Positions 48,070 through 56,770 of a DNA stretch of 64,000 bases are shown piece by piece. The stretch comes from Tubulanus polymorphus (Eukaryota > Animalia > Nemertea), in contig NC_134032.1 of assembly GCF_964204645.1 (NCBI RefSeq), positions 16,489,537 to 16,553,536 of the forward strand. The letters run 5' to 3'. Under the pieces are notes generated by a model that saw only the letters and a list, made by a program, of their open reading frames with translations, searched no databases and was not told where the DNA came from. The translations under genes were made by a program, and so were the position numbers. Within the stretch, counting starts at the first letter, position 1; the number at the start of each line of letters is the position of its first letter.

Positions 48070-51000
48070 ATGTTAATGATGGATCTGCTTCAGATTGTTA
48101 GGATTATTCTGATAATCAGCTTTCTGCTAAAAACTGATGCGCGTCTTCGAAAACCAGGTCTATTATTCAACTTATAATCATAATAATCATTCTCGATAAT
48201 TTAGAAATTTATGCAGAATTTAGAATAGATCACTGTCTGATTGAGTTTTCAAAAACCATTTGATTTTAATTCAAATTCTTGACTAAAATAGAATTGATAG
48301 CGTTCACAACTTCGGAGTATTATTTTTGAAATGTTGGGGTATTTTAGGAAATATTGCTTTACGCAAACCGACCAGATGGAGACAGACAGGTTCTAATGAT
48401 GAATCATTCCTCGCTGTTGATGGTGACAGAGATTCAACTAAAGAACATTTAACGTGTGTATATCTGACTCCTGAAACCAGTGTCTATGGATGGGGTTTGT
48501 CTATACCTCTCTGGTGGTATGTCGATTTACTAGATGAATATGATATTGATTCAGTCATATTTGCTCCATGTTTGCGCTACTGTAAGTACAGGAATTACCG
48601 ATGTGCCGTAGAATTAGAGGGGGTGGGGGAAGGGACCAAGTCTCCCACTGTTCTCACACACATGAACATAATTTCTTACATACCCCGCTGTTAACTAACT
48701 TTAATCAATTCTAACCTTCATTTTATACAATGTATTTCCTTAGCTGCATTTAATTGGCTCTGTTATAATCGTCATTAACTCTGTTTAAGAAATGCATGCC
48801 TAGGCTAGGTCTCAGTAGATATTTTATGGACTTAAGGGGGAGGGGAGACACGCGTGGGGCACGTGCTTCTATTTTAGCTTATATAATTGTTAAAGAAAAT
48901 TTTATTCATATGGAATTCGACTCCAGTATCTGCTTGAAATACTCTCAGAGTTTACTGGGGGAATCACCATGAGCTGGAATAGAGGATCCCTCCCCTATCA
49001 GAATCCTGGGTTCATCTCTGGGTACCCGAATAAAACGGGCAATGAATTATAGAATGTGAAAGGAATAACGTGGTCAATAATGATAGTAATAGCATTCGAT
49101 CTTTGTAATTCTCGCTGATCACTGCTGGCTCACTGCTGGCTCACTGCTGGCTCACTGCTGGCTCACTGCTGGCTCACTGCTGGCTCACTGCTGGCTCACT
49201 GCTGGCTCACTGCTGGCTCACTGCTGGCTCACTGCTGGCTCACTGCTGGCTCACTGCTGGCTCACTGGCTGCGAGTAAAATGAAACCTTTTCACCCATGA
49301 TTCTTCAAGTCTTTGAAATCCAAGGATGTCAGGAGTTAAATCTAAATTACTCAATGGCATTCCTCACTATAATTTAGTTCCGTCCCCTCCTCACATAAAA
49401 TTCGTTCATACAGCTTTAACCGGAAATGAATGATCTATCTGTATCTACATCAGTCTAATGTCACGTGATTGCTGCTCTATTACAACAGGTCGAACTGTAA
49501 ATGTAGATATATATCTAACGAATCGATTTATTGAAGACGATGTTTACGGAACAAATAAAACGCGTATTGGCGGAATAACCGGTAAAGCGAAACATACCGT
49601 TTATACCTTCCGATGTCATAGTAACTGCAAAGCCCGACAGGTGGCGGTTTTAGGGCGTTTGGGTGATATGAAACTGCAGTTCTGTGAAATAGAGGTTTAT
49701 ACTAAAGAACAAATAGGCGAGTATTATTGCATTAATCTAAATCGTGATCAACAAAACCTCGTAATATTTTCATTTGAATTTACTCGAACTCGCTTCCCCG
49801 TGGTATCTCGGAGGACTCCCCTATTACGGTCAAAATGGTCGGAGAAAACTCGTTGTAGCTGCCTTGCGGCTATATTTCGAAATTATTAATCTTTTCACAC
49901 AGAAAACGTCGCCCTGGGTAAATCTTTCATACAAAGAAACTACAAAAATAACGACCGCCTGGGATCGCGTTTACTCGATGGTAATGACTGCTTTTTCGAG
50001 AATAAACTCAGTTGTTTATCACTGGCTGGGAATATTATAACCGGTGAATGGTTTACTGTCGATCTCGGAGACACATATGACGTCAGATCTATACAGATCG
50101 CCACTATGGAAGGTACGTGTACCCCTGTGACGTCACACTCAGTGAATCGGTGTTTTAACGGGAAATATAAACACGTGCGATGTATTTGATATTTCAGACA
50201 AGCAGTTGGCGGCCAAACTTTATATTTTAGTATCGATGGATTTCGATGAGAAGAGGAGTATAAATGAAATGATGGAAAGATCAATGACGTGTGCAATCAT
50301 TACGGATCTATTCGGCAAATATACAGCTATGAGTCACTTACCATGTCAAGCGCCATCTACCGGTAGATATGTGATCGTTTATCAACCCAACTCGTACGGT
50401 TTAACGCTTTGTGAAGTGGAGGTTTTCGCAACTATTCATCGAGGTATCAGTCCAAACAAATCCATCTATTTTTCTTCAAATCTTTACATTTCTTCAAATC
50501 TATCATTTCTCTCAGATAATCTCGTTACTAAGCGACCGACGCAACAATACGGCGAATCACATGATTCCTGGTTAGCTATTGATGGTAACATTGACACATT
50601 TATTGAAACACCTGGTACTCATACACAGGAATGGTGGACAATCGACCTTCTCAATGTTTATCACATTGAAAATATATTTCTAACCAACAGAAATATTAAA
50701 GGTATGAAATATATCCAAATTTCGAACGAAAATATCATTTATCGGGTATTAGCAGAACTAGCTGCGAGAAGTGAGAAAACCAACCATCATATTAGAAGTG
50801 TTAGATTAGCTGTAAGAGTGTATTCTATAACTGTTTCAGGAGGTACTTGCACTTCACTACTCGGTGTTAGGGATGGTAGGATTTTAGATAGTCAAATAAC
50901 GGCACGTGATTATAAAGTTGGACACGAACCTAAAAATGCGCGAAATACAACTGGTTGGTGTCCTACTACAAGTGGATCGTGGTGGCAGGTTGAATTCCAC

Positions 51001-52597
51001 AATATCACATTAGTATCAGGGTTTACATTAGGAGGTATGTGTCTCGTCCAACCAGCTGTCATCTCGTGTGTGTCTCGTCCAACCAGCTGTCATATTGTGT
51101 GTGTCTCGTCCAACCAGCTGTCATATTGTCTGTGTCTCGTCCAACCAGCTGTCATATCGTGTCTCGTCCAACCAGCTGTCATATCGTGTGTGTCTCGTCC
51201 AACCAGCTGTCATATTGTGTGTGTCTCGTCCAACCAGCTGTCATATCGTGTCTCGTCCAACCAGCTGTCATATCGTGTCTCGTCCAACCAGCTGTCATAT
51301 CGTGTGTGTCTCGTCCAACCAGCTGTCATCTCGTGTGTGTCTCGTCCAACCAGCTGTCATATTGTGTGTGTCTCGTCCAACCAGCTGTCATATCGTGTCT
51401 CGTCCAACCAGCTGTCATATCGTGTGTGTCTCGTCCAACCAGCTGTCATCTCGTGTGTGTCTCATCCAATCAGCTGTCAAATCGTGTGTGTCTCATCCAA
51501 TCAGCTGTCAAATCGTGTGTGTCTCGTCCAATCAGCTGTCATCTCGTGTGTGTCTCGTCCAACCAGCTGTCAAATCGTGTGTGTCTCGTCCAATCAGCTG
51601 TCGCCTCACGTGTGTCTCATCCAATCAGCTGTCGCCTCGTGTGTTTCCCATCCAATCAGCTGTCATCAAAGTTATAATTGGCGAGAATTTCATTTTGATT
51701 TTTAGTGACGGTCGAACAGGCATGGGTACCAGATCAAGTACAAGTGACCTACAGCGTGGACGGGGTTACCTTTAACCCAATTCATCGAGCTCCGTCAAAG
51801 GTAACCCTAATCCCTTATAGATTCAAAGATGCTTTGGGAAATATCTACATGTAGTATAAATGAATATGTTTGTCTTAATCGATTAGAATATATTCACGGC
51901 ATTCTGGTGGGGACATCGAGTCAACTGGTTCGATCGGGAAATACTTCTCAGAATAATTCGACTTCACCCGATCTCAAAGTCTCACGCTTGTCTAACAGCC
52001 GAAATTCTAGGTTGTGACGTCACTAGTGAGTAAAGTTATTTGGAAGTTGATACGTATTTAACTGGTGATGATCCAGTGTCCGCTGTGACAGGCTTTCATC
52101 ACTCTGAACACGATATTTTACTCCGTTTTAGGCCATTACCTGAATGACTTGACCGTGCTGGTCGAACAGGAAGCGTTTAACCCGGATCACGTGACTATCG
52201 AACCGGAGAGTACGTGTCGGAAACTGAGTGAGGCTTTACCGGTCGGGGAGACTACAAAAATCAACTGTATCCCCAGTCATAGCGGTCGTGGTCGTCATGT
52301 GACTATAGTTAAACATAGCGCTATTAATTCACCGCTATCGTTTAGCGAAATAGAAATACAAGGCGAACCAGTATCAGGTAAACCAGACAACCCTCAACTC
52401 TAATCTTAACCTTTCAACCCGGCACGTAACCAGTAAATACTGTATCATTGCAGCCAATATTGCGTCATATCGACCTATATTCACTGCCAGTAGTTCTAAT
52501 CACAGCCGACTTGGTTTAGTCGATGAGAAATATGACTGGAATAATTGTGAAACGCTCGATGTGAACCGTGTGTGGTTATCAGTACAGATACAACAGC

Positions 52598-52636
<39 letters not shown>

Positions 52637-55600
52637 TTGCGGTTAAACATGTTATATTGAGGTTTCAACCGAACTGTTGTAGTAAGCGGCGACCGGTCAA
52701 ATCAACACGTGACACTTAAATATCGATCGATAGAATTTAAATATTGTTGTATTTTGTAGATGATGTTCGCATTGCTGAAAGTGTTCAAGTTCGTATATCG
52801 GACAAATTACCTCCTTCTACAGACCTCTCTCAACCTCCTCCTACAGACCTCTCTCAACCTCCTCCTACTAACCTCTCTATCGACCTCGCTAAACACATCA
52901 GCTGCTCCTACGTACGACATTATTCCCTTGATGCACTGTTCATCTGTCCACCGGAAGCGGTCGGTGATTACGTCATCGTCCACACGCTGGGAACGCGTGT
53001 CGTTGTTTGTGAAGTTGAAATCTATCAGAATTTCTCAACACGTAAGATTTAGATTTGAATTGAAATGGAAAATGAAATATTGACTCGTTAGAAATATCGA
53101 AACATGATGAAAAAATCTAAACACGGTGTTTTTAGATAACCTGGCATTGTTGAGAAATTCCTATTCGAGTAATCGTGCTAATGACTGGACCGGAGCGCCT
53201 CAACTAGCCGTCGATGGTAGCAAGTCCAGTTGTTTTGAAGCCGGTCGTGAATCTAGAACCTGGTGGACTGTTGACCTAGATACTGTCAATTATATCAGAA
53301 TAATTACAATCCTAAACAGAAACGATGTGAAATGTGAGTTGAATGATTAATTCAATATACTGTATCCAAACTCATATGAAAGACAGTATTTATAATTACA
53401 GCGGATTCTCTGAACAATTTGAAGATAACAGTCGGAATGGAATTTGATCGTTTATCCGGAACGAGCACGCGTCAAACAACATGTACAAACTTCGCGGGGG
53501 AGTTTAAACCGGGAGAGATGATGCACTTCCGGTGTCCCAAAGGTGCCGTCGGCAGACACGTGACCATCGCCGTATTAGACATGTATCTGTCTTTTTGTGA
53601 AGTGGAGGTTTTTGGATTTCTGTTCGAAGGTAAATTTGTTCTGATCAGAATCTGTTAAAACGGTTGAAGTTTAATTGGTTATCATCGTGTGTCTATTGTA
53701 GAGAATATATCTGAGAATAAACCAGCTCGTCAGAGTGATGCTGCTGAGTTGGCGTGGTTAGCGGTAGATGGAGTACTAGTCACAGATCAGCGAACCACCG
53801 CTTTATGCGCCCATATACATCAGTCGTCTACACGTGGGCAATGGTTGTCTATAGATCTGTTGTATATGTACAGATTGCGTAGTTCAGTTATAACTATCAG
53901 ATCGGACTGCTGCGGTAACGGTTTAAGATTAAGTTTGGGTCGCTTGAAGCCTAGGCCTGTTTCATCATGAGCTGCGTTTGTTTTATTTGTAGGTTTTGAG
54001 ATGAAAAATTTTAAGATGACGGTTTCATCGTCAACGGCACCGGATCCACGTGACCGTCCGTTCTATGTGTGTTTTCACAAACAGAGCGCCTCCTATCTCG
54101 GGGAGATACACTATATTCAGTGCCAGGACACATCCACCAGGGGGCGCTACGTTACTATCAGTAAACAGATCGGGGATCCCTCACCCCTGACCATTTGTGA
54201 AGTAGAAATATTCGGCGATAGATTCATCGAATCAGGTAATTTGAGGAATCCTAAAACTCTCGATCGATTTAAGACAATGTTCCAATTTTAAGTCGTTAAA
54301 TGTTTGAATTTTCAGATGAAAATATCGCTTTGAACAAATTAACAAAACAGAGCGACGGAGGAAGTTCCGGTGTTAAATCAGTTGATGGTTTAAATGACGG
54401 TAAAATACCTGATTCAACACACGTGATCGATACAGTCGGGGAAGGCGCCACCTGGTGGATGGTGGATTTACAAGATCGATACATAGTAAACTCTATTATA
54501 GTTACACAACCATTTGACGGTATGTCCATCACAAAACACCTCGCACATTATTCTGAAATACCACACAATGAACTGACGAGATCAAATACTGTAACTGTCT
54601 TTCTGCAGGTCCAGGTTTACAAGGCGCCACGGTTTACGTAGCAGAGAATTTCAACCCTAATGACGTCAATAGTTCACCAGATACAGCAGCAATTCAGAGT
54701 GAAACAACTAGTGATATATCAACTACAACTAGTGATATATCAACTGCAACACGTGGTGATATATCAACCACACCTCGTGATATATCAACCACACCTCGTG
54801 ATATATCAACCAGTACTGATGATGTAACTGTCAGTTCACAGAAAGCGATGGATGAAATAACAACACAACCGACACAACTCACAGTTTGTCATCAGATCAG
54901 AAAACAGTTACTACCGGGACAAATAGCAGATATAACGTGTAACAGTGACGCGATAGGACGATATTTAATCATCGTTAAAGAGAATGATTCGTTAATTCTA
55001 TCAGAAGTCGAGGTGTTCGGTACATTAATACCAGACTCGAGCAACACGAGCAGCACTAACCCGATAACATATCAAACAGATAGTACTCCAACTATAGGTC
55101 AGTATCAGCCGCTAACCCCCTCCCCCCCTCCCTCACTCGATCACTCTCTCGGGGTCAGTATCAGCCGCTAACCCCCTCCCCCTCACTCGATCACTCTCTC
55201 GGGGTCAGTATCAGCCCCTAACCCCCCCCCCCCTCACTCGATCACTCTCTCGGGGTCAGTATCAGCCCCTAACCCCCCCTTACTCGATCACTCTCTCGGG
55301 GTCAGTATTAGCCCCTAACCCCCCTCACTCGATCACTCTCTCGGGGTCAGTATCAGCCCCTAACCCCCCTCACTCGATCACTCTCTCGGGGTCAGTATCA
55401 GCCCCTAACCCCCCCTCACTCGATCACTCTCTCGGGGTCAGTATCAGCCCCTAACCCCCCTCACTCGATCACTCTCTCGGGGTCAGTATCAGCCCCTAAC
55501 CCCCCTCACTCGATCACTCTCTCGGGGTCAGTATCAGCCCCTAACCCCCCTCACTCGATCACTCTCTCGGGGTCAGTATCAGCCCCTAACCCCCCTCACT

Positions 55601-55946
55601 CGATCACTCTCTCGGGGTCAGTATCAGCCCCTAACCCCCCTCACTCGATCACTCTCTCGGGGTCAGTATCAGCCCCTCCCCCCCCCCTCACTCGATCACT
55701 CTCTCGGTTATAAACTCTTACTCACTGTGATTAACGTTGATTATTTCAGGTATACCGGATATTGATTGGGTATTAATAGGTGTTAATATAGCGGCCGGCA
55801 TCAGTTTAATTTGTCTGGTATCGATATTAATTGGTTTACGAGGCGCTGGAAAATTACCGTTAGTTCGGGGTAGCGCTAAAATACCGCACCTAAAACCACC
55901 AGCCAGTCCAAAAATATCTCCGTCACCAGTACAACCAAATACATAA
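48070..55946 (+). CDS. Type I membrane protein with 7 tandem F-type lectin (fucolectin) domains and a nested discoidin/FA58C domain, 19 exons
   Basis: Exons 48070-48157, 48348-48581, 49489-49716, 49903-50112, 50198-50443, 50516-50701, 50840-51034, 51706-51800, 51887-52025, 52132-52377, 52454-52681, 52760-53041, 53136-53333, 53402-53629, 53702-53914, 53993-54235, 54316-54519, 54609-55097, 55750-55946. Signal peptide; seven repeats of N(I/V/L)A..KP / AVDG / WWxVDL in one exon and C..C..GRYV / LxxCEVEV in the next; TM helix WVLIGVNIAAGISLICLVSILIGL; short Pro-rich tail. Confidence 0.85.
49119..49266. repeat. 11-bp minisatellite (TCACTGCTGGC) x~13
   Basis: Direct inspection. Confidence 0.92.
51037..51666. 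repeat. ~25-29-bp minisatellite (GTGTCTCGTCCAACCAGCTGTCATATC..) filling an intron of the lectin gene
   Basis: Starts at the donor after 51034 and ends ~40 bp before acceptor 51705. Confidence 0.92.
55098..55706. repeat. ~45-bp minisatellite (GTCAGTATCAGCCCCTAACCCCCCTCACTCGATCACTCTCTCGGG) x~13 filling the last lectin intron
   Basis: First unit begins exactly at the splice donor 55098. Confidence 0.92.
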
Positions 55947-56041: not shown

Positions 56042-56336
56042 CTAGACCACCGATCTGTATCACTAGACCACCAAGCTGTATCACTAGACCACCGATCTGT
56101 ATCACTAGACCACCGAGCTGTATCACTAGACCACCGATCTGTATCACTAGACCACCGATCTGTATCACTAGACCACCGATCTGTATCACTAGACCACCGA
56201 TCTGTATCACTAGACCACCGATCTGTATCACTAGACCACCGAGCTGTATCACTAGACCACCGATCTGTATCACTAGACCACCGATCTGTATCACTAGACC
56301 ACCGAGCTGTATCACTAGACCACCGAGCTGTATCAC
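56042..56336. repeat. 21-bp minisatellite (CTAGACCACCGA[T/G]CTGTATCA) x14
   Basis: Direct inspection; just downstream of lectin stop codon. Confidence 0.92.
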
Positions 56337-56770
56337 TGTGGAGCTGCAGGGTTAGGGATGAGCCGTCGTCCGTCCGTCCGTCCATCCGTCCGTCCATCCG
56401 TCCGTCCAGCGTCGTCAATTTTTGTGGCATATTTTGTGAAGCAAAGTAGTAAAGTTATTACGCTTATACTACGCTTCGGGTTCAAGGTCATACGGTTATC
56501 TATATGGCAACCAGGTGGCGCTTTTCGTAGCAAATGACGGATTTTAAGCGACTTTCAGCTAAGAACCTTAGTGTCTGACTGTGGAGACAACCACTCCCAG
56601 GACTGGGTGAAGGGTCGCGTCACTATCCTGTTGAATTGTACACACACAAAAATTATTGTCAGTTTTGTTGCACAAATTATGATTATTTTACATCGTGTTT
56701 TGCACAAATAAAACCGTAAATAACATGAATATTTTGTCTTATGTCTTGATGAATCGTGCAGTAAACACAA

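Follow-up and report, generated by a model that had tools for sequence, protein, structure and literature searches.

A gene of the nemertean Tubulanus polymorphus carries the exons of a discoidin (FA58C) domain between the two exons of one and the same F-type lectin domain (FTLD). It is located on the + strand of a stretch of 64,000 nucleotides (nt) from NCBI RefSeq assembly GCF_964204645.1 (contig NC_134032.1, positions 16,489,537 to 16,553,536 of the forward strand). We call this whole stretch the window, and all coordinates refer to it unless given in Mb. An HSP70 protein annotated in Tubulanus polymorphus (P0174) is 100% identical to the assembly of the window over residues 138-580, so the genome belongs to this species or to an animal that cannot be told apart from it at this gene. 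Both domain families are known; their nested arrangement is new. The gene is predicted to encode a type I membrane protein with seven degenerate F-type-lectin-like barrels (d1 to d7). A complete discoidin domain would occupy loop CDR4 of the third barrel, d3, and the two halves of this barrel would still fold together. We estimate the probability of this reading at about 0.6.

The nested anatomy of the gene had been proposed in a sequence-only reading of the window. Profile and structure alignments bear it out and place the FA58C exons between the two halves of one lectin domain. The anatomy of the gene, the identities of its domains, the insertion site and the conservation of residues were read directly from the DNA and the alignments.

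Exons of the nested unit and the discoidin insert

The nested unit is composed of the following exons and introns, where AAA denotes the residue numbering of the eel agglutinin.

50516..50701, + strand: N-half exon of domain 3 (AAA ~17-83), ending in ...IFLTNRNIK and the first base of a Gly codon
50702..50839, + strand: intron of 138 nt (GTATGA...TTTCAG), in frame and stop-free
50840..51034, + strand: discoidin (FA58C) exon 1, with the first Cys, the motif LGVRDGRILDSQITA and WCP...WWQVEF...VSGFTLG
51035..51705, + strand: intron of 671 nt, nearly all of it a 31-bp minisatellite; its splicing is needed for the frame
51706..51800, + strand: discoidin exon 2 (...WVPDQVQVTYSVDGVTF...), starting in phase 1 and ending in phase 0
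51887..52025, + strand: discoidin exon 3 (...IIRLHP...ACLTAEILGC DVT), with the last Cys and a phase 1 end
52132..52377, + strand: C-half exon of domain 3 (HYLNDLTVLV...GRGRHVTI...LSFSEIEIQG; AAA ~84-150)

All five exons (186, 195, 95, 139 and 246 nt) are open on the + strand, and each has an AG acceptor and a GT donor. The phase is 1 at the start of 50516, 1 past 50701, 1 past 51034, 0 past 51800, and 1 past both 52025 and 52377. The introns split a Gly codon (50701 with 50840-50841), a Val codon (51034 with 51706-51707) and a Ser codon (52025 with 52132-52133). The sequence-only reading had given the same borders, phases and peptides, which we confirmed by checking the AG/GT borders and the frame exon by exon. 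When frame-keeping pairs of donors and acceptors were scanned, its junctions ranked first at all four introns of the nested unit. The eight splice sites are all near consensus, and none of them is marked as weak.

The three inner exons encode one complete discoidin domain. Each was searched singly against a profile of 162 positions, made from 28 FA58C units of corals and other organisms that were taken from database matches. Exon 1 matches positions 3-68 (E = 4e-18), exon 2 positions 78-98 (E = 0.016) and exon 3 positions 117-150 (E = 1.5e-6). The three matches are ordered, do not overlap, and cover the whole domain. Exon 1 also matches positions 1-52 of 127 in Pfam PF00754 with 20.1 bits (E = 7e-4); this score is under the cut-off of 28.2 because the exon is a fragment of the domain. 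Both terminal cysteines are present, one as the third residue of exon 1 and the other three residues before the end of exon 3. In solved FA58C domains the end cysteines form a disulfide. A second pair of cysteines (in WCP and ACL) is common to the insert and to a paralogue elsewhere in the genome (locus L004).

The introns of the nested unit have features of their own. The minisatellite (51038-51666) has 20.8 copies of its 31-bp unit at 90% identity and no stops in any + frame, and a genome search found it at this locus only. It belongs to an open frame of 519 codons (50146-51702), which takes in the domain 2 C-half, the domain 3 N-half, discoidin exon 1, the entire minisatellite and two introns. 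Those two introns, of 72 and 138 nt, are both stop-free and in frame. For the 138-nt intron the chance of being stop-free is estimated at ~0.03 at the local base composition; its retention would insert a linker of 46 residues and leave the frame unbroken. Retention of the intron past 52025 would bring a stop within two codons (52026-52031), and the product would then be truncated at the discoidin domain and have no membrane anchor.

The lectin host, the break site and the fold of domain 3

The two halves of domain 3 were scored separately against the lectin family, the C-half through a profile of the seven C-halves of the gene. The N-half matches positions 2-41 of 91 in Pfam PF22633 with 33.8 bits (cut-off 27.8), and it aligns to residues 18-72 of the striped bass lectin FBP32 (3cqo) and to residues 30-80 of the eel agglutinin (1k12). 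The C-half alone gave only spurious matches to complement receptors among solved structures. The profile of the seven C-halves matches residues 78-146 and 235-290 of FBP32 (3cqo; E = 1.7e-16) and residues 107-150 of 1k12. On the lectin profiles both halves of domain 3 score as well as the intact sister domains.

The alignment to the eel agglutinin reproduces the numbering used in the literature for Asn35, Asp38, Cys50, His52, Asp64 and Arg79 (PMC5712786). The N-half ends three residues past residue 80 of 1k12, and these last three residues together with the split codon correspond to residues 81-83 of the eel agglutinin. The C-half profile starts at residue 78 of 3cqo, the equivalent of Arg86, which is the second arginine of the sugar motif. 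Since the end of the N-half and the start of the C-half abut, domain 3 is broken between AAA 83 and 84 with no residues missing. On the lectin profile the halves of the host thus adjoin each other round an insert that is a complete domain, and this is what constitutes a nested architecture.

Arg79 and Asp81 belong to CDR4, one of five loops of the top face that surround the fucose pocket, and strands beta6 and beta7 are neighbours in one sheet (PMC5712786). By alignment, the insertion site is the tip of CDR4 in the beta6-beta7 hairpin, i.e., of the loop that canonically holds fucose. The placement of the insert at the RxDCC sugar-contact loop, suggested from the sequence alone, is therefore upheld by the break at AAA 83/84.

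Domain 3 has lost half of its sugar motif. The Cys82-Cys83 pair and HX24RXDX4(R/K) together make up the fucose-binding motif (PMC5712786). Of these residues d3 has just His52 and Arg79; Asp81 is replaced by Ile, Cys82-Cys83 by Lys and Gly, and Arg86 by Tyr. The full motif is found in none of the seven domains of the gene.

Residues that touch each other across the two halves indicate whether the halves still belong to one fold. Two such pairs are known in the eel agglutinin, Cys50-Cys146 and Asp64-Arg131 (PMC5712786). Five domains (d1, d2, d4, d5 and d6) have Cys50 as well as Cys146, d3 and d7 have neither, and one is never found alone; such a pattern would arise by coincidence with a chance of 1/21. 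As for Asp64 and Arg131, six of the seven domains, including d3, have the two residues, and in d4 both are changed (chance 1/7). In d3 Cys50 is replaced by Gly and Cys146 by Ser. This domain keeps the Cys108-Cys124 pair, the WWxIDL core and the closing xEIEI strand, and the calcium motif h2DGx is present as AIDGN aligned with AAA residues 36-40. The co-varying contacts across the halves are indirect evidence in favor of a domain 3 that still closes into a single barrel.

The whole gene, its relatives and the origin of the nested domain

Outside the nested unit, the gene has the following parts.

48070..48157, + strand: probable first coding exon, with Met and a hydrophobic signal-peptide-like stretch (MLMMDLLQIVRIILIISFLLKTDA...), phase 1 end and donor cag/gtctat
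48348..55019, + strand: gene body with seven FTLD-like domains (d1-d7), every domain composed of an N-half exon and a C-half exon
~48350, 49905, 50518, 52456, 53138, 53704 and 54318, + strand: N-halves of d1-d7
~49461, 50233, 52134, 52885 (the d4 acceptor is approximate), 53404, 53995 and 54860, + strand: C-halves of d1-d7
55750..55946, + strand: last coding exon, with a phase-1 acceptor; encodes a transmembrane helix (WVLIGVNIAAGISLICLVSILIGL) and ~35 tail residues up to the stop codon TAA

The exon at 48070-48157 is the probable start of the gene, as its phase is compatible with the acceptor at 48348 before the N-half of domain 1. At the other end, the phase-1 donor at 55019 is compatible with the acceptor at 55750 and would join domain 7 straight to the transmembrane exon. 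A 45-bp array of 12.5 copies lies between them (55130-55707). It can be read as a Pro/Ser/Thr-rich stalk, but every + frame contains stops, and the array may be intronic rather than a mucin stalk.

The intron in the middle of the lectin domains, past the Cys-Cys position, is in phase 1 in d2-d7. The junction in d1 is ambiguous, and the pairs 48581>49489 (phase 1) and 48516>49454 (phase 2) both fit. The uniform phase-1 split that the sequence-only reading had described thus applies to d2-d7, whereas for d1 it is one of two options.

Tandem repeats are unusually dense at the locus. A CAG run at 52594-52634 encodes poly-Ser within the N-half of d4, and a 24-bp repeat at 52809-52878 makes a Pro/Ser/Thr-rich loop within its C-half. 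The C-half of d7 contains a 21/45-bp repeat (54704-54812) that makes a Thr/Ser-rich insert of ~60 residues. The barrel loops of d4 and d7 seem to tolerate such insertions. More minisatellites, perfect or nearly so, with units of 11 bp and 21 bp (49119-49267 and 56042-56337), lie in or beside introns of the gene.

The F-type lectin family is sizeably expanded in Tubulanus polymorphus. At least 53 further N-half exons were found outside the gene, many of them in tandem clusters.

C4 (23.77-23.80 Mb), C1 (23.596-23.599 Mb), C10, C7 and C9 (contigs of the genome): further N-half exons, many in tandem clusters

Lectin genes on another contig have the same layout of N-half and C-half exons, and the N-half of L012, where one junction was read, ends in phase 1 at the same place. 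Discoidin-like first exons were found at three other loci (L002-L004) among the matches listed, and they head units with a similar split. L004 shows all three discoidin exons; L002 and L003 each show the first two. The acceptor of exon 1 is in phase 1 in L002 and L004, and L004 has a phase-1 donor just past the last Cys. The second internal intron is seemingly at the same place and in phase 0, as judged by a phase-0 donor in L003 and a phase-0 acceptor in L004. None of the three first exons lies near a lectin N-half exon among the matches listed in the genome search. The nearest short discoidin match (L006) is a discoidin exon alone, with no lectin halves at its locus.

The mid-domain intron is thus generally in phase 1, and discoidin units elsewhere in the genome are similarly split and have phase-1 borders. 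Therefore the insertion of a phase-1 three-exon discoidin cassette, introns included, into the phase-1 mid-domain intron is the simplest origin of the nested domain and appears well supported. The idea of a symmetric 1-1 module moved by exon shuffling is borne out by the phase-1 intron in d2-d7 and L012 and by the phase-1-bordered unit in L004. We also considered an origin by two deletions from a lectin-discoidin-lectin layout. It is less economical, as it needs two separate phase-preserving losses, and it does not accord well with the halves having lost Cys50 and Cys146 together.

The insertion is not recent, since no paralogue of any of the five exons is closer than 49% identity in the genome search. 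Discoidin exon 3 and the C-half exon of domain 3 are single-copy in the genome. Although their paralogues are so distant, all five exons have an unbroken frame, and neither their splice sites nor their structural residues are damaged. Openness at such divergence argues for long maintenance as coding sequence. Three of the four exonic differences between the window and the DNA sequencing runs are synonymous, including one at 51767 in discoidin exon 2, although these numbers are small.

The rarity of the arrangement was assessed by an exhaustive profile search among 1.84 billion representatives, with the stop-free segment 50518-51033 (lectin N-half plus discoidin exon 1) as the query. It gave 127 matches, namely vertebrate multi-fucolectins and coral proteins with discoidin repeats, of which the best reaches 39% identity over the aligned segments. 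Some of them had an apparent order of N-half, FA58C and C-half. These proved to be weak cross-matches of the discoidin profile on lectin N-halves, with which it shares the fold, and not insertions. A length-limited search with the 519-residue open frame returned two fish proteins only; an intact HSP70 gene had no identical match in the databases, from which the proteins of this very genome therefore seem to be absent. Several discoidin repeats of the database protein P0029 (1027 aa) match the discoidin profile at positions 2-56 and 104-153 only; these repeats without the middle third may be real short units or may come from a faulty gene model. In the literature we found no case of a discoidin domain nested in a lectin domain and no case of exon shuffling in F-type lectins. 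Reviews of F-type lectins name FA58C as one of the partner domains; they report no nesting and say nothing of nemerteans (PMC5712786, PMC12221842).

The closest known systems share parts of this architecture. Complete domains inserted into other extracellular domains include the alpha-I domain in the beta-propeller of integrins and laminin domain IV within an LE repeat. As predicted for Tubulanus, a surface loop of the host there carries a complete domain whose ends are adjacent, and this insert is the main site of ligand binding. Those cases concern other families, whereas in the Tubulanus gene the host and the insert share a fold and the insert takes the host's own binding loop. Mosaic F-type lectins with FA58C domains in Microbulbifer degradans and teleosts combine the same two families, of the same jelly-roll fold, in one polypeptide (PMC5712786, PMC12221842). 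The domains of these mosaics are described as adjoining, whereas in Tubulanus the discoidin domain is inside CDR4 of the lectin domain. The genes of striped bass MsaFBP32 and oyster sperm bindin have two exons per FTLD, as the Tubulanus gene does, and the bass repeats are likewise flanked by phase-1 introns (PMC12221842, PMC5712786). However, the bass intron is near AAA 123-124, at the bottom of the barrel, while the Tubulanus intron is past 83, at the top, and no foreign domain has been reported inside the bass and oyster introns. Drosophila furrowed/CG9095 is also a transmembrane protein, and its FTLD has a degenerate basic triad and probably does not bind fucose (PMC5712786). Unlike the Tubulanus protein, it has one FTLD only, which is arranged serially, not nested, with CCP and C-type lectin domains.

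Alternative explanations and meaning of the nested domain

The most probable product starts with a signal peptide, continues as seven degenerate F-type-lectin-like beta-barrels, and ends in a transmembrane helix with a short tail. A three-exon phase-1 discoidin cassette would have entered the phase-1 intron that splits the lectin domain. The ends of the discoidin domain would be brought together by the disulfide between its terminal cysteines; because its linked ends lie together, the domain can sit in a hairpin loop, and the lectin halves could still close. The binding end of the discoidin domain would be directed away from the former sugar pocket. Since d3 lost most of its fucose-contact residues, its barrel would most likely serve as a pedestal for the discoidin domain, which would be the binding module, rather than as one part of a double lectin. 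We infer the inclusion of all these exons in one mRNA, the co-folding and the function from the features of the gene.

Several results weigh against this reading. Among the 127 best relatives there is no orthologue and no protein with the nested order of lectin and discoidin parts. The first internal intron of the cassette is a few residues off its position in the paralogues. The covariation between the halves rests on n = 7 domains. Having lost Asp81, Cys82-Cys83, Arg86 and the Cys50-Cys146 disulfide, d3 could be a decaying domain. Finally, one possible RNA run of Tubulanus polymorphus (2015) gave no contig at the locus, and all the runs that hold the locus are DNA; such a blank is not proof of silence.

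Alternatively, all the exons might enter the mRNA round a broken barrel, and the lectin pieces would be linkers on both sides of a free-standing discoidin domain. We regard this as rather unlikely. The domain has lost one of its two fold-clamping disulfides and half of the sugar motif, and the low-complexity insertions in other domains of the gene hint at relaxed constraint. However, relic halves would hardly be expected to keep Asp64 and Arg131, Cys108 and Cys124, the calcium motif, the WWxIDL core and the closing xEIEI strand, or to match the lectin profiles as well as their intact sisters do; and the two cysteines of the missing disulfide are gone together, as in d7. It is also unlikely that the cassette acts as a switch, with inclusion giving the nested form, whose discoidin domain takes the place of the sugar pocket, and with skipping giving a plain third barrel, so that splicing would change the ligand of one module of a cell-surface receptor. 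The symmetry of the 1-1 cassette would allow it: the skip junction (50701 with 52132-52133) reads GGC, a Gly codon, keeps the frame, and leaves a loop one residue shorter than that of the eel agglutinin. Whole F-lectin repeats are alternatively spliced in oyster bindin (PMC5712786). A skipped cassette had been expected to restore an intact lectin domain. This would hold for the frame and for a barrel of normal length. It would fail for a canonical fucose lectin, because half of the motif is gone, and a plain d3 without Asp81, the Cys-Cys pair and Arg86 would be no canonical fucose binder. The near-consensus state of all eight splice sites, none of them weak, also speaks against a switch, as does the blank from the one possible RNA run.

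That same blank gives no support to inclusion, so it is in favor of a further option, namely that the discoidin exons are relics no longer expressed, or parts of a separate transcript or a truncated one, e.g., a shortened secreted product ended by the stop at 52031, right behind the last discoidin exon, on intron retention. We consider this improbable. Silent relics of such age should have decayed, but the three exons are open, with consensus splice sites and with the cysteines and core kept, though no paralogue is closer than 49%; and no signal-peptide start precedes the exon at 50840. An error of assembly, i.e., a false join at the minisatellite that put discoidin exons into a lectin gene, is hardly credible. 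Contigs from short reads (three DNA runs of one study) are colinear with the window over 49850-51062 and 51638-52587. They stop where the repeat is reached from either side (51062 and 51638) and leave it unbridged, as a false join there would predict. However, each flank already joins lectin and discoidin exons, which makes such a join very unlikely: in independent contigs the lectin N-half runs on into discoidin exon 1, and discoidin exons 2 and 3 into the C-half. Two loci, each chimeric already, would have to be supposed. Moreover, the repeat and the exons are single-copy, and the three exons are consecutive parts of one domain.

We therefore prefer the nested discoidin domain in a co-folding third barrel, as a well-supported gene model rather than a demonstrated protein. 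It bears on no long-standing open question. If the nested form is the sole product, it would be the first described discoidin domain presented from CDR4 of an F-type lectin. If expressed as modelled, the gene would be a very clear natural example of an inserted domain made by exon shuffling, in which one can still make out the pre-existing phase-1 intron, the symmetric three-exon cassette and comparable cassettes elsewhere in the genome. Moreover, it would mean that CDR4 of the top face can carry a whole extra domain. This would be useful for the engineering of lectins and for the interpretation of degenerate multi-FTLD proteins of marine invertebrates.

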